A stretch of 64,000 nt of DNA from Oopsacas minuta (taxonomy: Eukaryota; Animalia; Porifera): the NCBI GenBank assembly GCA_024704765.1, contig JAKMXF010000255.1:310001-374000 (forward strand). Direction: 5' to 3'. Within the stretch, counting starts at the first letter, position 1. Every line of letters starts with the position of its first letter. This document shows positions 5,611 through 48,500 of this stretch, piece after piece. Both the position numbers and the translations under genes were made by a program. A model generated the notes under the pieces. The model made no database searches. It was not told the origin of the DNA and saw only the letters and a list, made by a program, of their open reading frames with translations.

Positions 5611-7577
5611 TCAAAGGACACAATCTTTCTTGATAAATTTCTCAATCGCATCAGCCCAAGCTTGTGCTCCGTTACTAAGATCTTCTAGATAGTATGTACG
5701 TGAGGGGGTGTGTATGAAGAAAGTACGTGGGTTTTTAACTTCAACATTGAGTGCAGTTGACCATGGAATTTCTCCTTTCATCTCGTTACCCACAGGGTCA
5801 ATATAGACCAACCTCGGGGTGTCAGTAAGGACTAATTGACGCTTTTTCGCGAATAAACCCTTTCGCTTTTCGATTTGACCGTCTTTTACTATTATTTCTG
5901 TCGGTGTATATCTACAAAAAAGAATGTATCAAACACTGTATATTTAATTAGAATCAGCAATACATTCATTATTATGTGATTACAAATATTACTATCAATT
6001 AATCTATGAGATAATTCTGTAATCTGTAATCGTCCGTGTAAGCGAATAAACAACTAGGTATAGTACGTGTGTATAATTATGCAACTAATCAGGGATTGCT
6101 AACTTATGCCATGGATTAGAGGCTGCTTGTTTGTCCAGCTGTTCCTTCTTCTCAGGTGTAATCTCTTCACAATCACTAACACTTCCTAAACACATATTCA
6201 GTGAATCCATCTGTAGTTTCATTTCTATATCCGCTTCAGACCTAGAATATCTATTAGCTCCCTTGATGTTAGCTTTACCCTCACTCGTCATAGGGAGGTA
6301 AGGCTGGATTAAAGGAGGTTCCATTTTGTGTAGTTGCTCCCAATTAATACCTATAAACAAATTGAAAATTTTTACGTCCCAAAATCTTAATTTTAATACA
6401 AATCATATGAGAAAGATTTTATAGGGGCAATTGGCTTGGTTCACAATAAACCATTGTATATGTATGCTGTAGACTCACCTTGATAGAAATCATGCATTTT
6501 GAGAGGTTCATATCCTCCAAAGTTCTCTGATCCTAATCTCTTAGTAGGATCTAGTACCAATAATTTTGTAACTAGATCAGATCCCTTCTCAGGAAATCCT
6601 CCAGGTATATTAAGATCAAGTTTTGTAATCCTCTGGAAGACTAGGTATTCTGTAGTAGCATGGAAAGGAGGCTTACCTGCTAACAGCTGATACACGATAC
6701 AGCCCAGTGCCCATATATCCGAGGCTTTACATGCTGATTTAGCTGTTAATAACTCAGGACTAACATACTCAGCAGTGCCTACGAATGAATTAGCTTTACA
6801 GTCCTTCTGACCTGAAAATATGTACAATGAATACACTCAATATAATTATTACGTAATAGTTTATTAATTGCTTATATCTCAATCCTTACCTTCATCTAAA
6901 ATTTTAGCTGTCCCAAAATCAGTTATAAGAATATGCATGTCAGCTCCTAGCAGTATATTCTCCGGTTTAAGATCCCTGTGTATCATCCCTAGGGAATGCA
7001 TGTATTCTAGAGCTACTACAATTTCTGCTGAATAGAACTGTGTAGCTAGTATGTCAAAACATCCTACTCTCTTTATGTAGTGTAAGAGTTCGCCCTTCTT
7101 TGCATAAGTAAGACCAAAGTACAGACGTTCCTTATCTTGAAAAGTGAAGAATAATCGAACGAAGAAAGGGTGGTCGAGTTTTTGTAAAACCTAAATATTA
7201 ATTGTCTTAAATAATTGAAATAAAAATTCGCATACAAATCTAACTTCTTTCTCTCTAGTGACTGTTGGCACTTTCTTGTACTTTATAATGTGTGACTTTT
7301 CGAGTATTTTGATAGCAAATTCTTTACCTGAACACTTCTCTTGTGCTAGAACAACCTCAGAATAAGAACCTGATCCTATTATTTTACCGAAATGAAAGTC
7401 TCCTGGTTTCTTCTTGGTAGCAATTGTATTAGATTGTTCCGATGTCTCTATAGCTTCTCCTGTCTCAGGATTAGCTGTAGCTTGTTGTACTGGTATATTA
7501 TCACCATTAGGATACTCTTGTTCTGGCGATAAAGGAGCTGTTTTAGATTTTACAGTCTCAATATCTGCTTCACTCAT
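5611..7577 (-). CDS. PDPK1: 3-phosphoinositide-dependent protein kinase 1; exons 7577-7245, 7190-6890, 6811-6479, 6350-6104, 5911-5611
   Basis: GSGSYSEV, HRDLKPENIL, DFG, ANSFVGTAEYVSPELL, C-terminal PH domain (KRKGLFAKKRQLVLTDTPRLVYIDP). Confidence 0.96.
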
Positions 7578-9848: not shown

Positions 9849-10003
9849 TGCACCAGGAATACAAATAAAGCTAATCACAAATTATACATATAATAATCAC
9901 AAATACAAAATTATTTGTATTAATACACGTATATTAAATGAATTGTCAGAATTATTTTGGGAGTTCCATTGGTTGATAAATAGAAATAATATTTGTGTCT
10001 TAA

Positions 10004-27645: not shown

Positions 27646-30600
27646 CTACCAATCAACTTGCTGTTCAAACCGACCAATAATTCTACTCTTCTCTTCCAGA
27701 TCTTTAATAACTTTAGTCCGCATATAAAATATAGTACAATCTCGATTAGTACAGATAACCTCTTCATGTAGGCTCTCTTGACAAGTTTGACACTGTGTCC
27801 AGAGGCGAGAGAACTTCTCTTCAAAATTACGTAGTTGTTCCACTTCTCTCTGATATAACTCAGAGATACGCTCTATACAATGCGAACAAACTGCTTCATT
27901 GCCCTTCAGTACAGATTTACATCCAATACAAGTCTCACTACGTTTTGCAAACATTGTCAAACCGCCAGCCTAAACGTTCGTAATACAGTTAGGATCGTTA
28001 TTGTAAACATTCTAAGATTATGAACCAAATCGATGTCCAAAATAAATTATTCCAATAGGATTCGTAATAATTAAATTTCTTGGTCTAGTGGGAATTTACA
28101 ATATGCGACCCTGACTGTAGTCCAAATAACTTAAATAGAATATGCAAAATACAAATCTAGAAAACATACCTTCGACGAGACAATAGTACGAGAGAGAGTG
28201 TGATCTCCATGGAATAATTCCCTCTCAGCCTTGTCTCCCATTATCGGCTCAAATATCCTCAGAAGCGGTTTACTAAGCTGTTGCTCTAGGTAGTACTTAA
28301 CATCAATAGGAATATTATTCTCCAGCACATAGATAGGATCTTCAGCCTTTTCATAAGCAGCCTGTTTCTTAGTACCAGCTATTATAACATAGGGTACACG
28401 ATCTCCTAGAGAAGGTGCAGATCCTGCATCTCTCTCCTTCATACGACCAGCCAGCACAACATGTGCTTGTCTAGCAGAATAATCCTTATCACTCTTAGTT
28501 AATTCTTTAGTTATAACTAGCTGGGATATATCGACACGATTACACATGAGATCTGATATCGTTCGTTTAACATACTCTATAGCATCACCTGGATCTCTCT
28601 CTATCAATATCTTCTTTAGACACGTGTTTATAAGGTTAGCTACTAGTGTACAGTTATCTCTACGAACTGTTTCAATACCTTTACAGTCCATTTTATCGTA
28701 TTTATCTGGTTGTGTATAGTAGAGACCAGCGTAACGCTTCTTATTAATAAGTAAGTAAGGGAAATATACCTAAAGAGTAATTGTCATTTATTCAGTGTAC
28801 AGTACAGCACTTTTACCCAATTAACCGAAAATATACACAAAACTCCCATTCTAACGAAATTCCCGAAACAAAATTATTAAACCTAATTCAATATCATATT
28901 TTCAAGACAGTTGAATTACCTTTTCAAACTCTAACTTTATAGGATGTGGGAAATTAGCAGTAACCAGCTCAGCTGCCTTTTTACCAAGATCAATAGACTC
29001 CTTAACAGTAGCAACATGGAACAGCACCATAACAGAATCTGTATCTCCATATATGACGTCAGCATTATGCGCATACCCATTAACAATTGAGAATTTCTCT
29101 TCTACATAGTCCTTTACTTGTCCTATCATTTCTCTTCCGTAAGCAGTAACACTACCACTTATCTCAATACAAGGTAGCTTACCTATACTAGCTCCTGTGA
29201 ATCCGTACACTGAATTAGCGCTCATCTTCAGGGCTAGTTGTCTACCGTCTAATACCTAGAAGATAGATTAAGTTATTTATTATAGTGAACTCCCGTTATG
29301 TCGAAGTTTAAGGGACCATATTTGTACAATTTAAGACATAGATATAAGCGGGTATTTTGAGATAACGGGAGTTAACTCTATTATACAGTCTACTCCGAAA
29401 ATTGAGACCAATATGGATTCAGACTGTATTAACCTTTTTCTTAAAAGGATCTTGTTCCATCTTCAAATCAGCTTTTGCTTTCCTCCTCGCCTTAAGTAAT
29501 TCCTCCAATATCACAGGCAGTAATCCCTTCCTCACATCAGCTTTAACAAAATAATTACCAGAAGGAGTTCTAATGTACTGTTCAGGCTGTAATTCGCTTC
29601 TATCTCCTGGTCCTAATAGAGATGTATAACACAGATTATGAGCCATCATAATGCTAGGATATAGAGATGAGAAATCCAGCACACTGACTGGATCTTTATA
29701 GAAAGCACGACGAGGCTCTATAACAGTAGCTCCAGCATACTCCTCTTCTCCATGTATTTTACGTGCAGGCATTAGTAGCTCTTGTTCTCTAGCCTTGCGT
29801 AACAGCTGAGATATTACCTGTGATATTATGGAATTCAGTTGGCTGTACGCACTGTTGTATCAAGTTATTCTCTATTCGTATATCTAACCTTAATCTGCTG
29901 GCCTCGAGTAGACAGATATGAAATAGGTACTCCAGTAACTCGAGCCATCTCAATATAGTTAATAAGACACATAAGCTTATCCAGTAGTCTAAGAGGGAGC
30001 ACTGCATCCCTAAGACAGTATATAGCCAGTCTTCTACGCGTTAGCTTATCTCCTTCCTGTAGCTCTGTTATCTTACTGTGATGAACATCCTCCTTCTGTT
30101 GACCCAGGAACAGATAACTCACGGAGTTGAGTGAGTAGGAACGTAATTTCTGATCTCGGAACAATATCTATACAGGTTGTAATCAAGTTATGATAGAGTT
30201 CAGTTCTAACCATATATGTTACCTTACAAATAAATGACCTACAATTCCCGCACCAAAAACGAGATTTTAGCACCTTTTTGACGTCATAAAATTACACCAT
30301 TTCCAGGCCGTATTCGGTTAAACAATTCTTATAATTATAAGCCCACTTCAATGTTATTCACTGGAAGTTACTTTGGTTAAGAGTTACAATTGATACGGAT
30401 ATGGATGACGTAATACAGCCCTGTATTAACGAGAGGTCAATACTGCTTAAATAACCATATTTAGCTATCTACGCACCTGTAACACATCAAACTGTACTCT
30501 TCCAGCCATTTTAGTACTCTTATTCTCTCTCTTACCATAAGCTTTAGACTGAAAAGTAGTATTAGACATAGTAGTCTTCTCATGAGTTCTACCCAGATAA

Positions 30601-33600
30601 GGGAATGAAATAAGGTTCAAAGCAGCAGCTCTGTTCATGAGGTAAGGAATATCAAAGTTAATAATATTGTAGCCAGTTAGGATATCAGGATCTGTTTCTC
30701 GTATCAGAGAAGACCAGTCTTTCAGCATCTCTGATTCATGTTCATAGCAAAGAATCTGGGTACATGGAATGTGTACAGATTAATAAGATGATAATGGGTG
30801 TAATAAATTATAAGAAATTCAAATAACATTAAATTTTAACATATTTATTCCTGTTTACGAACAGGCAAAACTTATTGTAATCTAACCTCAGCACCAGGGA
30901 TAGAAGCAGTTTCCTTGAGTGTGAATACGACTTTAAATAAGTAATCAGGCTGTCCTTGTATCTGCATAACATTAGCAATCTGTATGACTCTATCTTTATC
31001 AGCTTCTGGGAATATTCCTTTCCTGGCAGCACATTCAATATCAAAACTCAAAATCCTAAGAGGGCCTATAGCTTGCCATTCTTCCTCAGGAGCAAAACAA
31101 ACTAGATTATTATATTTCACATCAAGCTCTATCTGACAACGAGAAGACCTGTCTCTACGTACTTCATACTCACCACCCTTTAAAGATACCCAACCACACC
31201 CTACTAGTCCTGTGTCTACCATGAAGCGAACTACGAACTCTATGTTACTCTCATATGTGCTATATCTGTAACGAATAATTACTAATTACTGTGATTTATA
31301 AGTCACTAATATACAGGAAAATCCCAGGCTTCGATATAAAAGGGAGTTAACTGTATTGTGAATATGGATTAAAGTTAATTATAACCAATGAAGTTATACT
31401 ATTAATAGCTTACTGTTTCTGAGGATAATCTCCAAATTTAAAGTCTCCCTCTTCCAGTATCCTCCTGACAGTAGGCACTAGTCTAGGAGATGCTACTGTT
31501 ATACGAAAGAAAGGTCTCTTCCCTTTGCTATAGAAATACATAGACTGTTTTTCTTCAATAGCTACATCCAGGACACATAGTGTAAAGTTTTTAGCTGTAT
31601 TCTCTGATTTCAAAGCTTTATTCAAATCCTGTTTAAATTCCTCACATGCAACTACCTATAAGAATTAGACAATGGATGCGGGTTTTATGCACCATCAAAC
31701 TGTTCTTACATATTCCTGTATATTTTATAACAGTTATAAGAACATGTGTTCCAACTCCAAAGGGTGCTCTTATAACCAGCATCCACTGTATTCGGGAAAT
31801 AATGTAACGAAATAATAATGAAGTAAGACATGATTGTATAGAAATTGATAATCATATTAAGGAAGACAAGACAATAGTTCAGTGACGAGATTTATGCTTC
31901 CTATTAGACTTGCTGTAAGGAGATCTAGACCTGCTTCTATAAGATTTAGAATTATCAGTCTGTTTTCTTGACCTAGAAGATGAGGTTTCACTTCTCCTGT
32001 GGTGTCTACTGCTCTTAGATTTGTGTTTAGATCTCCTGGATGAGTGTCGATCAGCTGGTGAGCTACTATGTGAAGATTTACGCGCCCTCTGTCCATTTAT
32101 TGACGATACCTTTCTCTCATCTCTAAGTTCATCTTCATGAAGTGAAGACTCAGTAGAAGATTCATAGCTAACCATTGGTTTAGCTCTAGACTGTCTAACC
32201 TCAGCAAGAGCATTAGAACATACATTCTCTATCTCTGCTGACGTCATTTCTAATAAGAATTCTGTTACAGACATCTGCAGTACTTCAAGTAAGAACTTAT
32301 CACGTGAATCCTCACTTGTGAAAAACCGCACTTTATCAGTTGTATTTTGGGGTATAGTAGGCCCAATCATTTCTGTACCATCATAAGATTCCTTCCAGGG
32401 TTTCCCTGCTCGTGCATTTTTCTCCATAGTTTCTTTCTCGATTTGTTTCTGTCTGTTTCTTTCAAGTTTTTTGAGATCATCTCTTAACCAAGCAGGTATA
32501 ACACGTCTGCTAGCTGCCCAGTCCTCTTCCCCTTGCGTGTAGTCAGCAGCAGGAGCAGGACTGTACTCAGTGGAAGGGAAGTAAGAGGCTGCTGGAGGCT
32601 GTGAGGAGGTGTGGTAGCGAACAGGGGGAGGGAATCCGTGTCCGTAATCAAATGACTGAGGAGGTTGTTCCTCAGGAGCAGGAAGAGGTACAGGGGGAGC
32701 TTGCTGTGTAAGAGCAGGAGAGGTATCACTCCATTGAGGGAGACGTGACACTTGTTCAGAGGGATTATTAGCATACACGTGATTAGGATCATACACTCTC
32801 CTGGTTAGAAGAGAATCTTCCTCACTCACTCTCTTCCTACGATTGTTTGAGTTATAATTATCAGAGTCACTATCACTGTCATCTCCCAGTAGACGTTTGG
32901 CAGCTAGCTCTATCTCCTTGTTATCAAGTTGAAGGGGAGGAGATGTCCTCTCTTCTGACCTGTCTCTTCCGTAGGGCTGCTGGTAGTGATGTCTGGGTAC
33001 ATATCTGTAAGTATACTCGTGAGGAGGTGGAGGGGAGGGGGGAGGTTCTGAAGGAGGACTGTACTCATGAGGAGGTTCCTCTATATGCTCCCAGTGTGAC
33101 TGCTGAGGGAGGTGAGGGGGATGATGATACTCGTCAGGAGATTCAAATTGTCCTGTCTGAGGGTTAGATTGTGTGTGTGAGTCTTGAAATGGAGGGTGTT
33201 GATGTTGTGGATGTGGTGGTTGTCTGTGATCATGTGAATAATTACTATAAGGGACAGGAGAGTACTGACGATAGTGGGGGTCCTGGTTATTCGGGGGGTA
33301 GTTAGGAGGGGGAGGGGGCCGCATGTACTCTGTCTGAGCTCCAGGAGGACCTGGAGGAGGAGGAGGGGATATCGTCTCCCCAGGAGGTCCAGTAGGGTAA
33401 GGAGGCTGTTGAGGGTATACTGTATTATGTACACGGCGTTGTTGAGCCCATTGCTGAGCTCTCATCCTCCAGGAATCAGCTGATTGATCATGAGGAGGCT
33501 GTGGAACTACAAGGTTCTGATTTTGTGGAGGCATTCCATGGGGTAACATTGGTTGTTGCCACATATGTGTTCGCTAGTAGTGAAATGTATGTATTGTGTA

Positions 33601-34093
33601 AAGCACTGTATGAATATAAATTGATAAATAGATTAGTACTCTGTAATATGTAATTAACCTGATTAGCAACTGATATAGGAGGACAGTCTGAATACAAGTA
33701 TGGCATAAAACCATGGACATGAGTCATAACACTATTTCCTTCCTTCGTAATACCAAACAGACGTATGTGAGGTGCTTCATTCGGATCTGACCCTCTTGCC
33801 ATAGTCGCATGAGGTTTTCCTGAACTAACATCAATCTCAATTTGCTGGAATATGAAATCATCCTCTAGACAAAACTCTAGACAAACTTTTCTCTTCCAAT
33901 CATTAGGAAAACTAGCATCTTCTTGTATTTGCAATAAAGGTAGTGTAGATGATGGTATCTCCTCCTCATTTTCAATATCATCAAAATATTCTTCTATCTC
34001 ATCATCATCGTCATCATCTGCTGCTTTAGTGCGCTTTATGTTACTGCTGTTTATCTCAGGGGCTCCTCGCTTAGAGGCACCTCTCGAGGACAT
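27646..34093 (-). CDS. POLD1: DNA polymerase delta catalytic subunit; exons 34093-33659, 31655-31414, 31265-30887, 30755-30477, 30167-29889, 29817-29434, 29255-28920, 28769-28171, 27969-27646
   Basis: [14 protein letters not shown] (ExoI), [46 protein letters not shown]-terminal CysA/CysB clusters. Confidence 0.97.
29281..29380. mobile_element. MITE family A (internally deleted), POLD1 intron 6
   Basis: TAGTGAACTCCCGTTAT ... ATAACGGGAGTTAACTCTA. Confidence 0.75.
31879..33564 (-). CDS. PNISR: PNN-interacting Ser/Arg-rich protein-like, intronless, nested on the same strand in POLD1 intron 1
   Basis: [18 protein letters not shown]-terminus, [35 protein letters not shown] and an RS-rich tail resemble PNISR/SFRS18 as I recall it. 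Confidence 0.8.
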   Translation of the reverse strand: MWQQPMLPHGMPPQNQNLVVPQPPHDQSADSWRMRAQQWAQQRRVHNTVYPQQPPYPTGPPGETISPPPPPGPPGAQTEYMRPPPPPNYPPNNQDPHYRQYSPVPYSNYSHDHRQPPHPQHQHPPFQDSHTQSNPQTGQFESPDEYHHPPHLPQQSHWEHIEEPPHEYSPPSEPPPSPPPPHEYTYRYVPRHHYQQPYGRDRSEERTSPPLQLDNKEIELAAKRLLGDDSDSDSDNYNSNNRRKRVSEEDSLLTRRVYDPNHVYANNPSEQVSRLPQWSDTSPALTQQAPPVPLPAPEEQPPQSFDYGHGFPPPVRYHTSSQPPAASYFPSTEYSPAPAADYTQGEEDWAASRRVIPAWLRDDLKKLERNRQKQIEKETMEKNARAGKPWKESYDGTEMIGPTIPQNTTDKVRFFTSEDSRDKFLLEVLQMSVTEFLLEMTSAEIENVCSNALAEVRQSRAKPMVSYESSTESSLHEDELRDERKVSSINGQRARKSSHSSSPADRHSSRRSKHKSKSSRHHRRSETSSSRSRKQTDNSKSYRSRSRSPYSKSNRKHKSRH

Positions 34094-34403
34094 TATAACT
34101 ACAAAGTTATAAGCACAGATATATACACACACAAAAACAAAAAATTAGAAACCAAACATTTTACACATTATTTGCAAGAAAAATTTGTTATAAATATCCG
34201 GTTTCTACTGTATGATGTTGTTGGGTAGTCGACCTGCAATTTATGGGGAGTTGGAGCAGTGGCGGTCCTGGGTATGCCAAATCTTTGGACCGCCCCCTTG
34301 GCGTTAAGACCGATGAAATAAATAGAATTATCACAATATATAACTAGTACGTCATCAAACAATTATCAAACTAAAAACTAATTCAACACTATATCTATAC
34401 ATG

Positions 34404-37400
34404 TCAATCGCTGATGTCACTAGAATCCTCTTGTATATCTCCCAGCTCCTCACCCAGATGGAATACTTCCACATTATCTACAAGATCCAATTCACAATTT
34501 AACCCAATCAAATCAGCCTTCACTTGTTCAACTTTAGCAGGATTAGCTACTACAGCACTACGTGTTATACTATTATCAAATATCAATGGTAGATACTTAT
34601 TAGCAGCTGATTCAATATCACTGAGTGTAAGTTCAGAAATTTGCTTCAGACATACTGCAGAATCAGTACAACCAGGCAGTAGCTCTGCATCCCATGCATT
34701 ATTTGCCATACATGCAAATGTACTCAGACTAGCTACATAATCATATACTTTTGTGTTTTTACCAGCAAGGAACTCTTCTTGTGTTATTTTACGTTCTCCT
34801 GTTGCATACCCCATTATGATATCTCTGGTAACTTTATAAGCTTCTGCTAGCTGTGCTGAGCGTTGTAGTGTGAGGTATATGTAACCTGTTATACGACTGT
34901 AGAACAGTCCATAGCTATACGAGAGACCTGATCCTCTAATCTCGCACCAGAGGGGACCCTCAAGCATAGAGAGACATGAGAACAACACGTCTAATGCACA
35001 TACAGCCATAGACCCCTCCTCGAGGTCTACCATTGTTTCCTGTAGAAAGAAACTACTATCAATACCTGCTACTCCTGCTATAAGACCCAACGTTTTTGAG
35101 GGAGGGGATAGTCTATATTCCTTGAGAGTTGTAATTACAGGACGTTCAATTTTATAGGATGAATCAAGTGTGTTTAATTCCTCCTTGAAGATGTTATTAA
35201 ATGTTGCGAGAGGATTAGATTTCAAACGTAGGAAATTAGTGAAGATATTAATAGATGTGTTTTTGATTTGAAACAGAGAATTTCTGATTCTATCAATTTC
35301 AACGAGAACCTTGTCAGAATCTTCATCTAGCTTTTTCAATAGTCCACTCAAGAATTTCTTTTGTTGAAGAGAGTTGCCAGCATTATGAAGTATATCATGT
35401 GAGTATAACAGAGTATTAAGTAGCTCTCTCATGACCTTAGAACCTGATCTATTGAAATCAGGGATAGAACTCAACATTCTCTTAATCAGGACTCTAGTAC
35501 GAGCTTCGGTCAGCTGTGTTTTGTAGCATAACTCATGTACCCATTGAACACCTAGCTCAAAATCTGCAATCGGTAAATTGACCTTTAATAATATACAATT
35601 TACAGCACTGCTGTATTTAAAACGTGAGCTATAACTAGTACCAATACCAAAGTTGTATTCAACTAGATCTTCATTGAGTTGTTGTGTTACCTGCTCATAG
35701 GGAATTACTATACCATTTCGTAAGATAGGAGATTCTAATAGAAGTTCTATCATTAGAGGAAGGTATAGGTTATCTTGTAGAGACAAGCTGGCAGAATCGA
35801 ACAGAAATTCTATAGAACAGAATTGAGACTTGACATGTGATACAATTATAGGAAGTTTGAAATCATTTATCTTTATATCAACAGGGAAATCTGACTGTTT
35901 TGTAGATAGTTTCTTTGAAGGAAAGTTCTGAGTAGTTATACATGTGTGCATAGATATCTTACTAGGATCAGGGGTGGGTAGTGATTTTAAGAATTCTGAA
36001 GGGACTTCTGCTTCGTGTTCAAGCTTAGCCTTTTCTAACTCAGTCTCTTTCAATTTGAGACCGTCTTCTCCAAGTTGAGCTTGTTGTAGCTCAATTCTAT
36101 CTTTCTCTTCTTTCTCAGTTTTCTTAGCATACTCTTTGCTCGGTACAGCCACACACGATACATGTGGACCATCATTGAAATATTTATTAAGAAGTCCTAG
36201 CCAATATTCAACAGGTTCTTTCTCCAATTTATCATAGTTATTCAAAACATCCAAATCTTTCAATAACAATTTCTTATCATAGTAATACAATGAATCTACA
36301 ATACAAGGCCCACAGAGAAGTCCATGAGCATTCTCTTCGAGTGAATATATATGTGCTTTTTTCTGCTGACGGACAATTCCATATAATCTCTCTAAATTAA
36401 ATAATTTACCCTCTGTAGAGTTCTCACCCAACTGTTTCAATAAACAGTAACACTCGTGAGGCAACAATTCTAATTTTGCATTAGGAACAGATGTAAAGTT
36501 GAATGAAAACATAGATAGTGTTTGTAGACAGTAGTAGAATGATACATTATTAGCAAATGGATCTGTACAATCTATCATGAACATTTGTAGGGGAGCAGCT
36601 GATGTGGAAGTGAGATAGTCACCTGTAAGAACATGTAGCTAAGAATAACATACAGTAGAGCGACGACTAAAATATCGTACATATTATTACCTAATATTTC
36701 TAGAGCTAGAAGTTCATACAGATTATGACCTTCACAAATATTAAAGGCTATCCTAGCCATACCAGTACTTTCATCATCAGCTCCAAACTCAATACGAACA
36801 TCTTTACTCTGTTCTAGAATAGGAACAGGACTGGACCATGGAAGAGGATCAATTGGAGGAGGGAGAGGTCCATTAGCTAGCACATTATCTTCAAACTTAA
36901 ATAGAACATCTAACAACTCATCTCTTGGAATAGTACCACATACAATTAGGTATAGGTTAGAAGGTATATAGTATTTTTTATGATATTCGCGAACCTATAA
37001 TGAGAGCATACAATACATTGTGATAATGTTTGATATTATCGCTATTTGAAAAGTACCTTCAAATTAGAACAAGAACTTCTAATCTCATCTAGTCTACCTC
37101 CTGTACAACTCTTATAACCACACTTCCCAGGATACATATGGTTACAGAGTTCAAAGTCTATCATACGTGCTGGCTTAGATTGAGAGTCTTGCATTTCACA
37201 ATACACAACTCCAGCATTCTCACCTTTCCCATTAATATGATGTACTTCAGTAGTGTATGCAGCGTCAGTTAGTGTGGGATAGAGAATATGATGTAGATAT
37301 ATTGGTAGGACAGAGAGGAAACCTTCATGACCAGCTGTTACTAGTGTGTAACATGTATGATCTACATCTGTGTAAGCATTGGTTCCTTCTGATAAGCATC

Positions 37401-45556: not shown

Positions 45557-48500
45557 TCAAGGGTCTCCATCAGGCCAGTTAGAACCCTTCCATAGCTTAA
45601 CATTTCCTACACTCCCAGCTGAGAGAAGACATGAATGTTCATCAAAGAAATCTATAGCATACACAACACTCTTATCAGTACCGTGTTGTAATGACGTCAC
45701 TATTTCTTGTGTCATTAAATCCCAAAAGTATATCTTACCCTCTTCAGAACCACTAACAACGTATGCGTCTGTAGGACTGAGAGCTATACCAACTTTATAA
45801 TCTTTGTTCTTGTGACCTAAAATAGTTAATGTGTGTAGAGATGTACACTGCACAATTATAACAACAAATATTATATCGTGAGATTTACATGACATGGATA
45901 ATGTAAGTGGTAGACATCGGAATTCCACAACTCTCATTCATTGGAATTTTATCACAGACATAAAATTTGATATTTGCGTGTATTTTGGTGACTGATGTAA
46001 CAAATGGGATAAACAACCTATATACGTATAACTAAAACTTAAAACCTAATTACAATATCTAGAAAGGAACATCTGTTCACTATAAGTCACAGGCCAAAGC
46101 AGTACATATCAGAAAGTTGTTGATACAGTTTCATCTTTTGCATAGAATGTCGGTATATCTTCTATTGGAGAGGTATTGATATCGAAATACAGTCGGAATA
46201 TTAGATCCTCATCTGACGTTTCAACATATGTTTCTCCAAAACATTCACTTTGAACGCCTATTTTCAAATTATAATCCAATGAGAAAACTGTAACATCAGA
46301 ATTGTTTGGTTTATTCTTGTTAATCGAAAGAATACGACATTCTGTAATAGTAGATCTGTTACATAATTTTCCATCATAATCACCTGGTATCCTCGTTATT
46401 TTGAATGATATGATCCGTTCGATGCAATCTACACAAGCAAATACCTGTAGTTTGTAACCTTGGACATAGAAATCGGGACCTATGATATCTAAATCAGATT
46501 GAGAATAAAATGGTTTATACAAATGCACTTCACAACCATCTAGGTCTTTCTTGCATTTAAGTTTCAGCTCCATTTCATCAAGTCTCATTCCTAGAAGTTC
46601 TACCTGCTCACGTAACATGTTAATATGCATTATATGCTGATCCTTGTTATGTTCTGGTAATTCCTCTCGTTTGATATAAGAGTCACTACATTCTGAATAT
46701 GAATTTCGAATAAAATGGCAGAATAGACGAAATTTCGGACACTCCTCGTTATGCTCTTCAATAATTTCTCTTTCCATAACTTCACCACATTCATTAGGAC
46801 AGTCTACCAAGAAATTTGGACATTCATCCAAATGTGTAGCTAAATCTCTTGCTAATCCAGTGCGTTGGCAATATTCACAAGATATGTTTCGCATTGAACA
46901 ATAGTAGGTTTCATGCATAGCAACATCTCCTCTTTCATTAACTTGGTTACATTCTAGACAAAGTTCGAGAAAATATTGGCATTCATGTAAGTGCATTTCA
47001 GCTTCAGACAAACTTCCCTTCCACTCACAACCTCTCAATAAAGGACATCGTATTTGCAGTTTGGAAATAGAGTCCCTGATTTTTACAAGAGAATTAGGAT
47101 TGGTCGATTTGGAACACCCTTTACAAGTTATGTTTGAAGAATCTAGTACAGCTTCTCGTATAATACCCTCATATATGGGACATATTACATAACTCCTCTC
47201 CAATTCTGTTAAGTTTACAATCAAATAATCTTCTTTATACCCACAGTACCTCAGAAAAGGTTTAACTACATAGAGTAGGTCATTGCTACTATCCGGTATT
47301 TCCTCATTAGACAATAAACATTTCGCCATATTTTAGAATTTTATGAAAACAGTAATTTGAATTAATATGATATCTGAGCATATTTAATCCACTAATAAAA
47401 GTGATGCCAAATGTCAGGCTGTTTAAATAGAGGCTATACATACTTGTAGGTGTTTGGTTACAGTTTAAAGTAGACTTCCAGAGGATCGTAAAGACACACA
47501 GCGTTATCAAATGTGTTCCAAACAAGGAATGTTTAAGAACACATAAATTTGGAAGGTAAATAAAACTCCCTCGATTCCTCCTATCAGGAATTCACCTAAC
47601 CTACAATACATTCTATCTCACCTTTGTACACACATAGTGTATCTCCATTAGTTTTATCCAAAAGTCTTATATTGCTGTCTAGAGCTGCTGCTAGAATACA
47701 GTGTCTATCATGAGAATGTTTAGCATGTGGTACAGGGTGGTTAATATTAAAGAGAGATAATTCTCCTGCTCTTATGTCATAGCAACGTATTGTACCGTCA
47801 ATACTTGAAGTTAGAATCTCATGATCTGTGATGTCTATGCTAGATACACTGTCTGTTGCTTCATCTAGTACCTAAACGATCAATTCCATAAAATTAATCA
47901 AGGGACCAGTACAACAAATTGGATGGTACAGAGAAATTCGGCAACGGGCATTTTTCTCCAAATACGTACAGTCGAAATCGGGTTATTTCGTCGTTTGGGA
48001 AGTGCAATCAAATGGATAAAACAACCGATTTCGACTGTACTTGTATTCAGAAAAGGTCACACCCTGGACAACTAAATTTTTTAAAATTTTGAGCACACAT
48101 CAGCTGGACGAATATTCTTTGAGATATAGCAATGCAAAGTGCTGATCCACAAATAATCGCGGTTAAATAATTCCTAAGAACACAATCTCGTTATATTCGA
48201 CTGTTCGCAATAATCTATAAGATTGCTGTTTATATATGAGACACTTTAACCACCAATTATATAATGAATAACAAGTAGTACAATATGATTAGTACACTAA
48301 AGAATTTATAGAACAAGTATCGTATAAAAATTATTAGATGAAACAAGATATACCTGTATGGGATCAATCGCCTTTGATCTACAATCCCAGATTCTAACTG
48401 TCTTATCATAAGAACCAGATATAGCTATAGAAGAGTCACTATTGAATAATACACAATTAACACGATGCTCATGACCTCTGAATTTGCGTAGAGGTTTTCC

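Follow-up and report, generated by a model that had tools for sequence, protein, structure and literature searches.

The 64,000-nt stretch of DNA analysed here (the window) comes from the glass sponge Oopsacas minuta and, as read from its sequence, carries POLD1 and a PNISR gene, both on the minus strand. POLD1 coding exon 1 (33659..34093, minus strand) opens with an ATG at 34093-34091, comprises 435 nt or 145 codons, and ends in phase 0 with a CAG at 33659, followed by GTTAAT (donor GT at 33658-33657). Intron 1 (31656..33658, minus strand) is 2003 nt long, and exon 2 (31414..31655, minus strand), which encodes the POL3_N domain (Pfam PF24055), starts after TATAG. All coordinates that a preliminary description had proposed for the locus hold on reading the sequence. 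In searches made one exon at a time, exon 1 pairs with human POLD1 residues 91-154 and exon 2 with residues 165-230, in colinear order; the latter match and the POL3_N domain bear out the resemblance of exon 2 to the POLD1 N-terminal region that had been suggested. Exon 1 shares 65% identity with its orthologue in another assembly (L011), where the domains DNA_pol_B_exo1, DNA_pol_B and zf-C4pol follow in the POLD1 locus.

The in-frame passage from exon 1 to exon 2, likewise claimed beforehand, is seen in RNA. One contig of the RNA-like run X4 joins 33659 to 31655, skipping 2003 nt with GT..AG borders on the minus strand and flanked on either side by 42 nt or more (raw joint 31653>33657, cut +2, ends CT..AC). 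Four further GT..AG introns of POLD1, including the joint 31265/31414, appear in contigs of the same run.

Wholly within this intron, whose removal the RNA contigs show, lies the PNISR coding sequence (31879..33564, minus strand), a single exon of 561 aa ending in TGA. Its product passes the gathering threshold of Pfam PF15996 (31.7 bits against a cutoff of 27, in two stretches), the best stretch pairing residues 350-388, which include a 16-residue block, with profile positions 4-42 at the start of the profile. A precomputed PF15996 match is also present on the GenBank protein KAI6653791.1 (P0001), discussed below, and on the protein P0002. Among the 100 nearest named clusters in the Atlas, which are language-model clusters, 18 are PNISR, the top three included (best score 0.93). 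Like the PNISR family (PNN-interacting serine/arginine-rich protein), the O. minuta protein has the block at the profile start and an Arg/Ser/Lys-rich C-terminal tail: S, R, K and H predominate from about residue 485 to residue 561 in the translation read directly, and this tail is conserved in P0002. Unlike the family, it is short and has a proline-rich N-terminal half, and word searches recovered sponge relatives only, both the whole protein and residues 335-480 returning just KAI6653791.1 and one relative. An exact look-up of the 561-aa protein on the contigs gave no match. The 61-Mb O. minuta genome holds a single copy of PNISR.

Three contigs of run X4 lie over PNISR, at 31722-31991, 32274-32621 and 32693-33192. 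They belong to a separate RNA body whose 5' limit falls between about 33573 and 33589 and which extends in the 3' direction at least to 31722. The open reading frame (ORF), the Pfam score and the RNA contigs agree on an intact, same-strand, 561-aa PNISR-like gene in POLD1 intron 1, as had been described. The contig depths of PNISR and POLD1 look similar, though contig depth cannot rank genes.

The preliminary description had pointed to synteny in related species as informative, and the nesting was indeed found in four other ENA assemblies (L011, L024, L025 and L026) as well as in a relative of about 96% identity. In these four assemblies, exon 1, an intact PNISR ORF and exon 2 follow in the same order and on the same strand; the PNISR ORFs encode 584-613 aa, start MWQQPMW and are 43-65% identical to that of O. 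minuta. Because the nesting is common to relatives, it must be old and is no assembly artefact. Between O. minuta and organism B, the 36 listed differences in PNISR divide into 19 synonymous and 17 non-synonymous, and indels within the ORF are multiples of 3 nt, a pattern consistent with purifying selection; the 85-nt spacer that precedes the gene shows indels of -1, +2, +1 and -2.

These data bear directly on the alternative that the arrangement is an assembly artefact, or that PNISR is a dead retrocopy dropped into the intron, which we regard as extremely unlikely. The ORF is intronless and its first half has about 50% G+C against about 35% in the surroundings, features that a retrocopy might display, but the high G+C is due to proline codons, and transcripts with a single exon make up some 60% of the O. 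minuta set in any case, according to a table in PMC10282587. Nor does the assembly give way at this point: the stretch is supported by an X1 DNA contig that spans 30316-34800 unbroken, by four overlapping X2 contigs and by a contig from a second study, the contig of organism B spans 31913-34058, and four other assemblies show the nesting as well. The ORF is, moreover, intact in five assemblies, present in RNA and enriched in synonymous changes, while neither a second PNISR copy in the genome nor an A-tract after the 3' UTR was found.

Between the POLD1 donor and PNISR lies a non-coding, poorly conserved spacer of 85 nt (33574..33658, minus strand). It ends in a TAG (33574..33576, minus strand) situated 9 nt before the PNISR ATG, which is a candidate spliced-leader acceptor. 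The bases after TAG 33576-33574, CGAACACAT, precede the ATG and read R-T-H-M in frame with the 145 codons of POLD1, whereas a second acceptor, CAG at 33608-33606, leaves 41 nt before the ATG and is out of frame; on both points the sequence reads as had been claimed. The same spacer serves as the intron of a GenBank fusion model. KAI6653791.1, recorded as 'DNA polymerase delta catalytic subunit', has 709 aa, which is exactly 145 + 3 + 561 aa, and consists of POLD1 exon 1, RTH and PNISR joined via the TAG acceptor. The O. minuta annotation was made with BRAKER 1.9 and Augustus 3.2.3. Since Augustus by default predicts no nested genes, and so places no gene inside an intron, we infer that the 709-aa protein is an annotation artefact.

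A chimeric splice of this kind had been put forward as a possible product of the locus, and a regulated mRNA encoding the 709-aa POLD1(1-145)-RTH-PNISR as a minor or condition-specific isoform would be compatible with the open frame, with the length of the spacer (85 nt, where the POLD1 introns observed in RNA measure 71-178 nt) and with the existence of the GenBank model. We nevertheless consider it very improbable. That sole record is the work of an automatic predictor, and the 33659>33573 joint is missing from the joints in the X4 RNA contigs. The contig joining exon 1 to exon 2 extends beyond the donor by 42 nt or more and shows no fork; in these 31-mer contigs a fork would allow k-1 = 30 nt, and contigs drop rare variants and precursors. 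When the fusion junction itself (P0001:96-215) was used as a query, no fusion fragments were returned, only the exon-1 products of four relatives. It also counts against the chimera that by alignment POLD1 residues 77-145 are only a fragment of the N-terminal domain, and that PNISR homology begins exactly at the conserved ATG.

A tolerated fusion would need an acceptor in frame, and an open in-frame AG does lie 6-9 nt before the PNISR ATG in five of five assemblies. Proximity of an AG to an ATG was, however, rejected as evidence because it occurs at chance level: an AG stands at most 9 nt upstream of 50% of all ATGs in the window, and an open in-frame AG at -3, -6 or -9 precedes 18.5% of them. 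The five-of-five count was also set aside, L011 and L025 being close relatives and the comparison offering a single informative 3-nt length change; it is not significant. The aligned TTAG of L024, found 35 nt upstream, does not keep the frame, and across the assemblies the distance from donor to ATG ranges between 94 and 861 nt.

The 5' end of the POLD1 mRNA places the locus in a further context. Its body begins at 34098, with 5 nt ahead of the ATG, immediately after an AG acceptor at 34099..34100 (minus strand), and the loose end of an X4 contig beyond 34100 reads AAAAAACTTAC on the minus strand (11 nt). The same bases directly precede AG|GTAAGT in nine copies of the SL RNA gene. The string is found nowhere in the 64,000-nt window, so the leader is not a local 5' UTR exon. 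The POLD1 mRNA carries a spliced leader and the organism trans-splices, in keeping with published accounts in which glass sponges employ spliced-leader trans-splicing (PMC7986045 and the searchable text of PMC10282587). For PNISR, no leader was seen among the X4 loose ends listed; the end of its RNA coverage, between 33573 and 33589, is consistent with use of the TAG acceptor at the resolution of contig-level data.

Trans-splicing raises the prospect of an intronic operon, in which PNISR would have no promoter of its own and one POLD1 pre-mRNA would meet either of two fates: cis-splicing across the guest, yielding POLD1, or receipt of the leader at 33573 together with polyadenylation before exon 2, yielding PNISR. 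Any one transcript would then give just one of the two outputs, and the two would be regulated together. We hold this reading tentatively and think it rather unlikely. Its appeal is that the organism trans-splices, that POLD1 itself carries the leader and that an AG acceptor stands 9 nt ahead of the PNISR ATG. The gap between donor and acceptor is just 85 nt, and no conserved block, promoter-like or otherwise, was found upstream of PNISR across five assemblies. The spacer from the PNISR stop to POLD1 exon 2 resembles intercistronic spacers in its length (223 nt here and 107-287 nt in the relatives), the minus strand holds 21 of the 24 window ORFs that reach 150 aa, and the 18 genes called in L011 all lie on one strand.

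Against such a common precursor, PNISR is not connected to exon 1 or to the 85-nt spacer by any RNA contig of X4, the four spacer positions checked (33590, 33617, 33619 and 33639) have a depth of 0, and the leader is missing from PNISR among the loose ends listed. In nematodes, trans-splicing tends to give way to cis-splicing when a donor lies close upstream. By that token, were PNISR transcribed through exon 1, with a donor 85 nt upstream on the same precursor, some cis-spliced fusion would be expected, and none is seen. Operons had not been reported in hexactinellids as of 2021 (PMC7986045).

At its 3' end, the PNISR mRNA has a UTR covering at minimum 31722..31878 (minus strand), where the X4 contig 31722-31991 runs on unbroken from the coding sequence and shows no differences. 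This UTR contains a 45-nt hairpin (31733..31777, minus strand) with arms of about 13 nt that starts GGTTATAAGA and is a member of a dispersed repeat family. L011 has a hairpin at the matching place (9910-9955), with a folding z-score of -3.9, and the hairpin is absent in L024, L025 and L026. A role as a 3'-end signal was considered and rejected on account of this absence in three of the four relatives and of the inconsistent position and orientation of ten other copies with respect to open frames. A search of 31300-34500 against Rfam gave no RNA family match.

In our judgement, PNISR, lying on the same strand in POLD1 intron 1, is very probably a nested gene of the kind that is ordinary in glass sponges. 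The specific PNISR-in-POLD1 locus is new, yet it is of an already known type, the conserved nested genes of glass sponges. Of the two messengers, that of POLD1 is made by joining exon 1 straight to exon 2 across the guest, with the leader attached 5 nt ahead of the ATG, as the RNA contigs show. For PNISR, the mRNA probably starts at the TAG acceptor that lies 9 nt ahead of the ATG, or receives the leader there; polyadenylation would take place in the 223 nt between the PNISR stop and POLD1 exon 2, and translation presumably begins at the conserved MWQQPM.

The closest parallels come from Aphrocallistes vastus, for which the searchable text of PMC10282587 gives 2432 nested genes against 83 annotated in O. 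minuta, attributing low counts of nested genes to the method of annotation. As in the present case, these are single-exon guests in host introns, conserved between A. vastus and O. minuta; unlike it, they are treated in that searchable text without PNISR-in-POLD1, the strands of guest and host, or a link to trans-splicing. The legend to the glassin locus in the same text describes a nested gene that the O. minuta annotation turns into the first exon of a different gene. With about 12% of genes nested in the glass-sponge lineage according to this source (PMC10282587, searchable text), the premise that same-strand nesting is unusual, from which the preliminary description had argued, carries no weight.

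Comparison with other animals is instructive in part. The operons of nematodes, Ciona and Oikopleura share with this locus dense genes on the same strand, a leader a few nt before the ATG and short spacers to the next acceptor, but in O. minuta the guest sits inside an intron of the host, whose exons are joined across it, and no polycistronic precursor linking the two is displayed by the contigs. Same-strand nested genes of Drosophila and vertebrates resemble it in being complete genes, with their own mRNA, in the same orientation inside a host intron; they differ in lacking a spliced leader and in that their guests have their own promoter. In humans, PNISR and POLD1 are on different chromosomes.

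The main practical value of these results is the correction of a database record, KAI6653791.1. Because this entry fuses POLD1 exon 1 to the whole of PNISR, O. minuta seems to be without a separate PNISR and its POLD1 seems broken. The genome paper of O. minuta argues for the loss of core genes, and merged nested genes therefore matter for such counts. That the locus couples a replicative polymerase to splicing is speculation. As a broader proposal, which we likewise rate as doubtful, same-strand guests of glass sponges such as PNISR could be matured from the host pre-mRNA by leader trans-splicing and intronic polyadenylation, with no promoter of their own, an arrangement kept in at least five lineages. 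If this were true, every POLD1 transcript would give either polymerase mRNA or PNISR mRNA, and the 3' end of PNISR would be kept only about 100-290 nt from the next acceptor of its host. As an instance of same-strand nesting the locus is clear-cut and deeply conserved, and it may provide a test bed for the maturation of guests from host transcripts in glass sponges.

On the minus strand of the window, the first exon of POLD1, the gene for the catalytic subunit of DNA polymerase delta, runs from its ATG at 34093 to 33659 (145 codons, ending in CAG and followed by GTTAAT), and the second exon starts at 31655, after TATAG, with the reading frame kept. The intervening intron 1, 2003 nt long by sequence reading and by a joint in run X4, contains one long ORF of 561 amino acids on the same strand (33564-31879). 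The coordinates in the preliminary description are all correct when the minus strand is read. The POLD1 exons were searched singly, each by reference, without a joined spliced model. Exon 1 aligns with residues 91-154 of the human subunit and exon 2, which includes the Pfam domain POL3_N, with residues 165-230; therefore, no coding exon is absent between the two pieces.

Pfam, the protein atlas and tail composition agree that the guest ORF is PNISR: it scores 31.7 bits against a Pfam threshold of 27, PNISR accounts for 18 of its 100 closest named atlas clusters and takes the first three places (best score 0.93), and its C-terminal tail is abundant in Arg and Ser. Because the genome of this glass sponge, or hexactinellid (a 61.46-Mb assembly of 365 contigs), holds only this PNISR match, the guest is the orthologue rather than a spare retrocopy. 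In organism B, a relative about 96% identical to O. minuta and represented by a contig of run X5, the two indels within the PNISR ORF are +3 and -3; the 85 nt upstream contain four, of -1, +2, +1 and -2, and 19 of the 36 listed ORF substitutions are synonymous. This substitution pattern fits purifying selection acting on a partly disordered protein, and the comparison points to a working gene. The proposal of an intact PNISR ORF within intron 1, on the strand of its host, is thus borne out by sequence reading, by Pfam and by indels in threes. X5, a DNA run from another study and filed under a different organism label, matches window 28963-34799 at approximately 95-97% identity, with numerous small indels in the non-coding parts; organism B represents a sister species or a divergent O. 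minuta population.

An assembly artefact was ruled out: a contig from DNA run X1 spans 30316-34800 unbroken with one difference only, and four overlapping contigs from DNA run X2 cover 30268-34800. The assembly is therefore sound here. Run X4 behaves as RNA, with five joints that have GT..AG ends on the minus strand and lie precisely at POLD1 exon borders. The predicted POLD1 splice, 33659 to 31655, is carried by an X4 contig that reaches at least 42 nt on either side of the joint and removes 2003 nt; since strong alternative use of one donor would break a contig within 30 nt in 31-mer graphs, the exon 1-exon 2 form is dominant. X4 contigs also cover PNISR at 31722-31991, 32274-32621 and 32693-33192, and onward to at least 33427, while depth is zero at 33590, 33617, 33619 and 33639, the four positions checked between donor and acceptor. 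The PNISR RNA is consequently a separate body and not a retained intron. Its 5' limit, at or below 33589 in X4, agrees with the TAG acceptor at 33576-33574, nine bases from the PNISR ATG, and speaks against the CAG acceptor at 33608-33606, which lies 41 bases away and is out of frame.

The TAG acceptor is in frame with exon 1 (R-T-H-M), and the chimeric splice that had been envisaged, joining POLD1 residues 1-145 to PNISR, already stands as a database model, since GenBank KAI6653791.1 ('DNA polymerase delta catalytic subunit', 709 aa; UniRef100_A0AAV7JYN1; window 31879-34093) consists of exactly exon 1, RTH and PNISR. The RNA did not support the chimera: the X4 RNA contigs contain no 33659>33573 joint, and its sole record is this predictor model. 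The underlying annotation was made by BRAKER 1.9 / Augustus 3.2.3 with TopHat hints. Published work records 2432 nested genes in Aphrocallistes vastus versus 83 annotated in O. minuta, blames such gaps on predictors that disallow nested genes, and describes one nested gene that the O. minuta annotation turns into the first exon of a different gene (PMC10282587). Given this predictor history, the published merging of nested genes and the missing RNA joint, the fusion model is best read as an annotation artefact. With exon 1 merged into KAI6653791.1, the remainder of POLD1 must be annotated separately or truncated. POLD1 residues 1-145 break off partway through the N-terminal domain, so a fusion protein would carry a domain fragment, and PNISR homology begins precisely at the conserved ATG.

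Statistically, an in-frame acceptor near the PNISR ATG carries little weight: of the ATGs in the window, half are preceded by an AG no more than 9 nt upstream, and 18.5% have an open, in-frame AG at -3, -6 or -9. An open in-frame AG precedes the PNISR ATG in five of five assemblies, two of which are close relatives, with one informative 3-nt length change; in L024, a locus from another ENA assembly, the aligned TTAG lies 35 nt upstream and out of frame. A 406-aa same-strand ORF at window 46109-47329, unlike PNISR, lacks any AG in the 44 nt preceding its ATG.

The nesting is common to five assemblies in all and to organism B. A protein 53% identical to PNISR (P0002) is encoded on the ENA contig L011, where one strand carries the orthologue of the upstream gene (724 aa, 74% identical), POLD1 exon 1 (65%), PNISR and POLD1 exon 2 (78%). 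A query with the part of KAI6653791.1 that spans its junction retrieved exon 1 products in three more ENA assemblies, each with PNISR between exons 1 and 2 on the same strand. The synteny put forward as a check extends, in order and strand, to four other assemblies, which judging from synteny and identity are probably from other glass sponges. In all five, intron 1 has the same position and the PNISR ORF is intact (561-613 aa, MWQQPM start, TGA stop); the spacer from POLD1 donor to PNISR ATG varies (94-861 nt), and that from PNISR stop to exon 2 is always short (107-287 nt). Directly 5' of the ATG lies TTAGCCAG, at L011 7990-8003 and at 6570-6583 and 6566-6582 of the relatives' loci L025 and L026, supplying two AGs 4 nt apart; the O. 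minuta counterpart is CTAGCGAA. This motif is possibly a conserved trans-splice acceptor.

The POLD1 mRNA is itself trans-spliced. An X4 contig continues beyond the AG at 34100-34099, which lies 5 nt before the POLD1 ATG, and there reads 11 bases of foreign sequence, AAAAAACTTAC (minus strand), not found anywhere in the window. Followed by AG/GT, it occurs at nine genome sites versus two for a reversed control. These sites (L002-L010; C10:47280, C10:77418, C10:92154, C16:67145, C19:67062, C41:92623, C133:200365, C348:25636 and C348:29468 of the O. minuta assembly G000) make up a conserved gene family: each has a conserved block upstream, then a leader exon with a CTTACAG end that closes with CATAAAAAACTTACAG, the donor GTAAGTTGG and, downstream, a small hairpin (GGTGTC..GACACC). 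The family comprises at least three sequence variants. They are candidate SL RNA genes; trans-splicing in hexactinellids has been published before (PMC10282587, PMC7986045).

In the mechanism that we propose, a POLD1 transcript observed to be spliced across its guest and to bear the leader accompanies a PNISR RNA seen as a separate body, whose mRNA would start at the TAG acceptor, through leader addition or a start just upstream, and would end inside the 223-nt stretch that precedes exon 2. The PNISR precursor may derive from the POLD1 promoter, as a nested operon, or from a promoter of its own. The tiny spacers around PNISR, the packing of the whole neighbourhood on one strand and the lack of any conserved block upstream of PNISR in the aligned assemblies favour the shared promoter, but a donor 85 nt upstream on one precursor should cis-splice, and among the X4 contigs neither such a splice nor any RNA joining exon 1 to PNISR was seen. 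As to packing, the minus strand carries 21 of the 24 ORFs that reach 150 aa or more in window 1-64000, and all 18 genes called in L011 1-17794 share one strand, a pattern consistent with glass sponges having long arrays of co-oriented genes.

The PNISR 3' UTR holds a copy (31733-31777, minus strand) of a dispersed 45-nt hairpin with arms of approximately 13 nt that begin GGTTATAAGA, and two loop types; the family occupies some 50 or more places in G000. L011 has a copy in the matching place (9910-9955; about 80% identical, flanks unalignable), and the hairpin is missing in L026, the closer relative, L024 and L025; this distribution may reflect independent insertion, repeated loss or a function. 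POLD1 introns also contain multi-copy repeat pieces at 29288-29373 and 30242-30322, with numerous loose ends and 10-20 times baseline depth in the DNA runs. The former looks like a MITE, having a perfect 12-nt inverted repeat at its flanks (AACTCCCGTTAT / ATAACGGGAGTT).

Nested genes, many of them conserved, and trans-splicing are published hallmarks of glass sponge genomes (PMC10282587). PNISR within POLD1 is a new, well-conserved example of such nesting and not a new kind of system; its value lies in correcting the mis-merged GenBank model KAI6653791.1 and in offering a compact place for testing the nested-operon idea.
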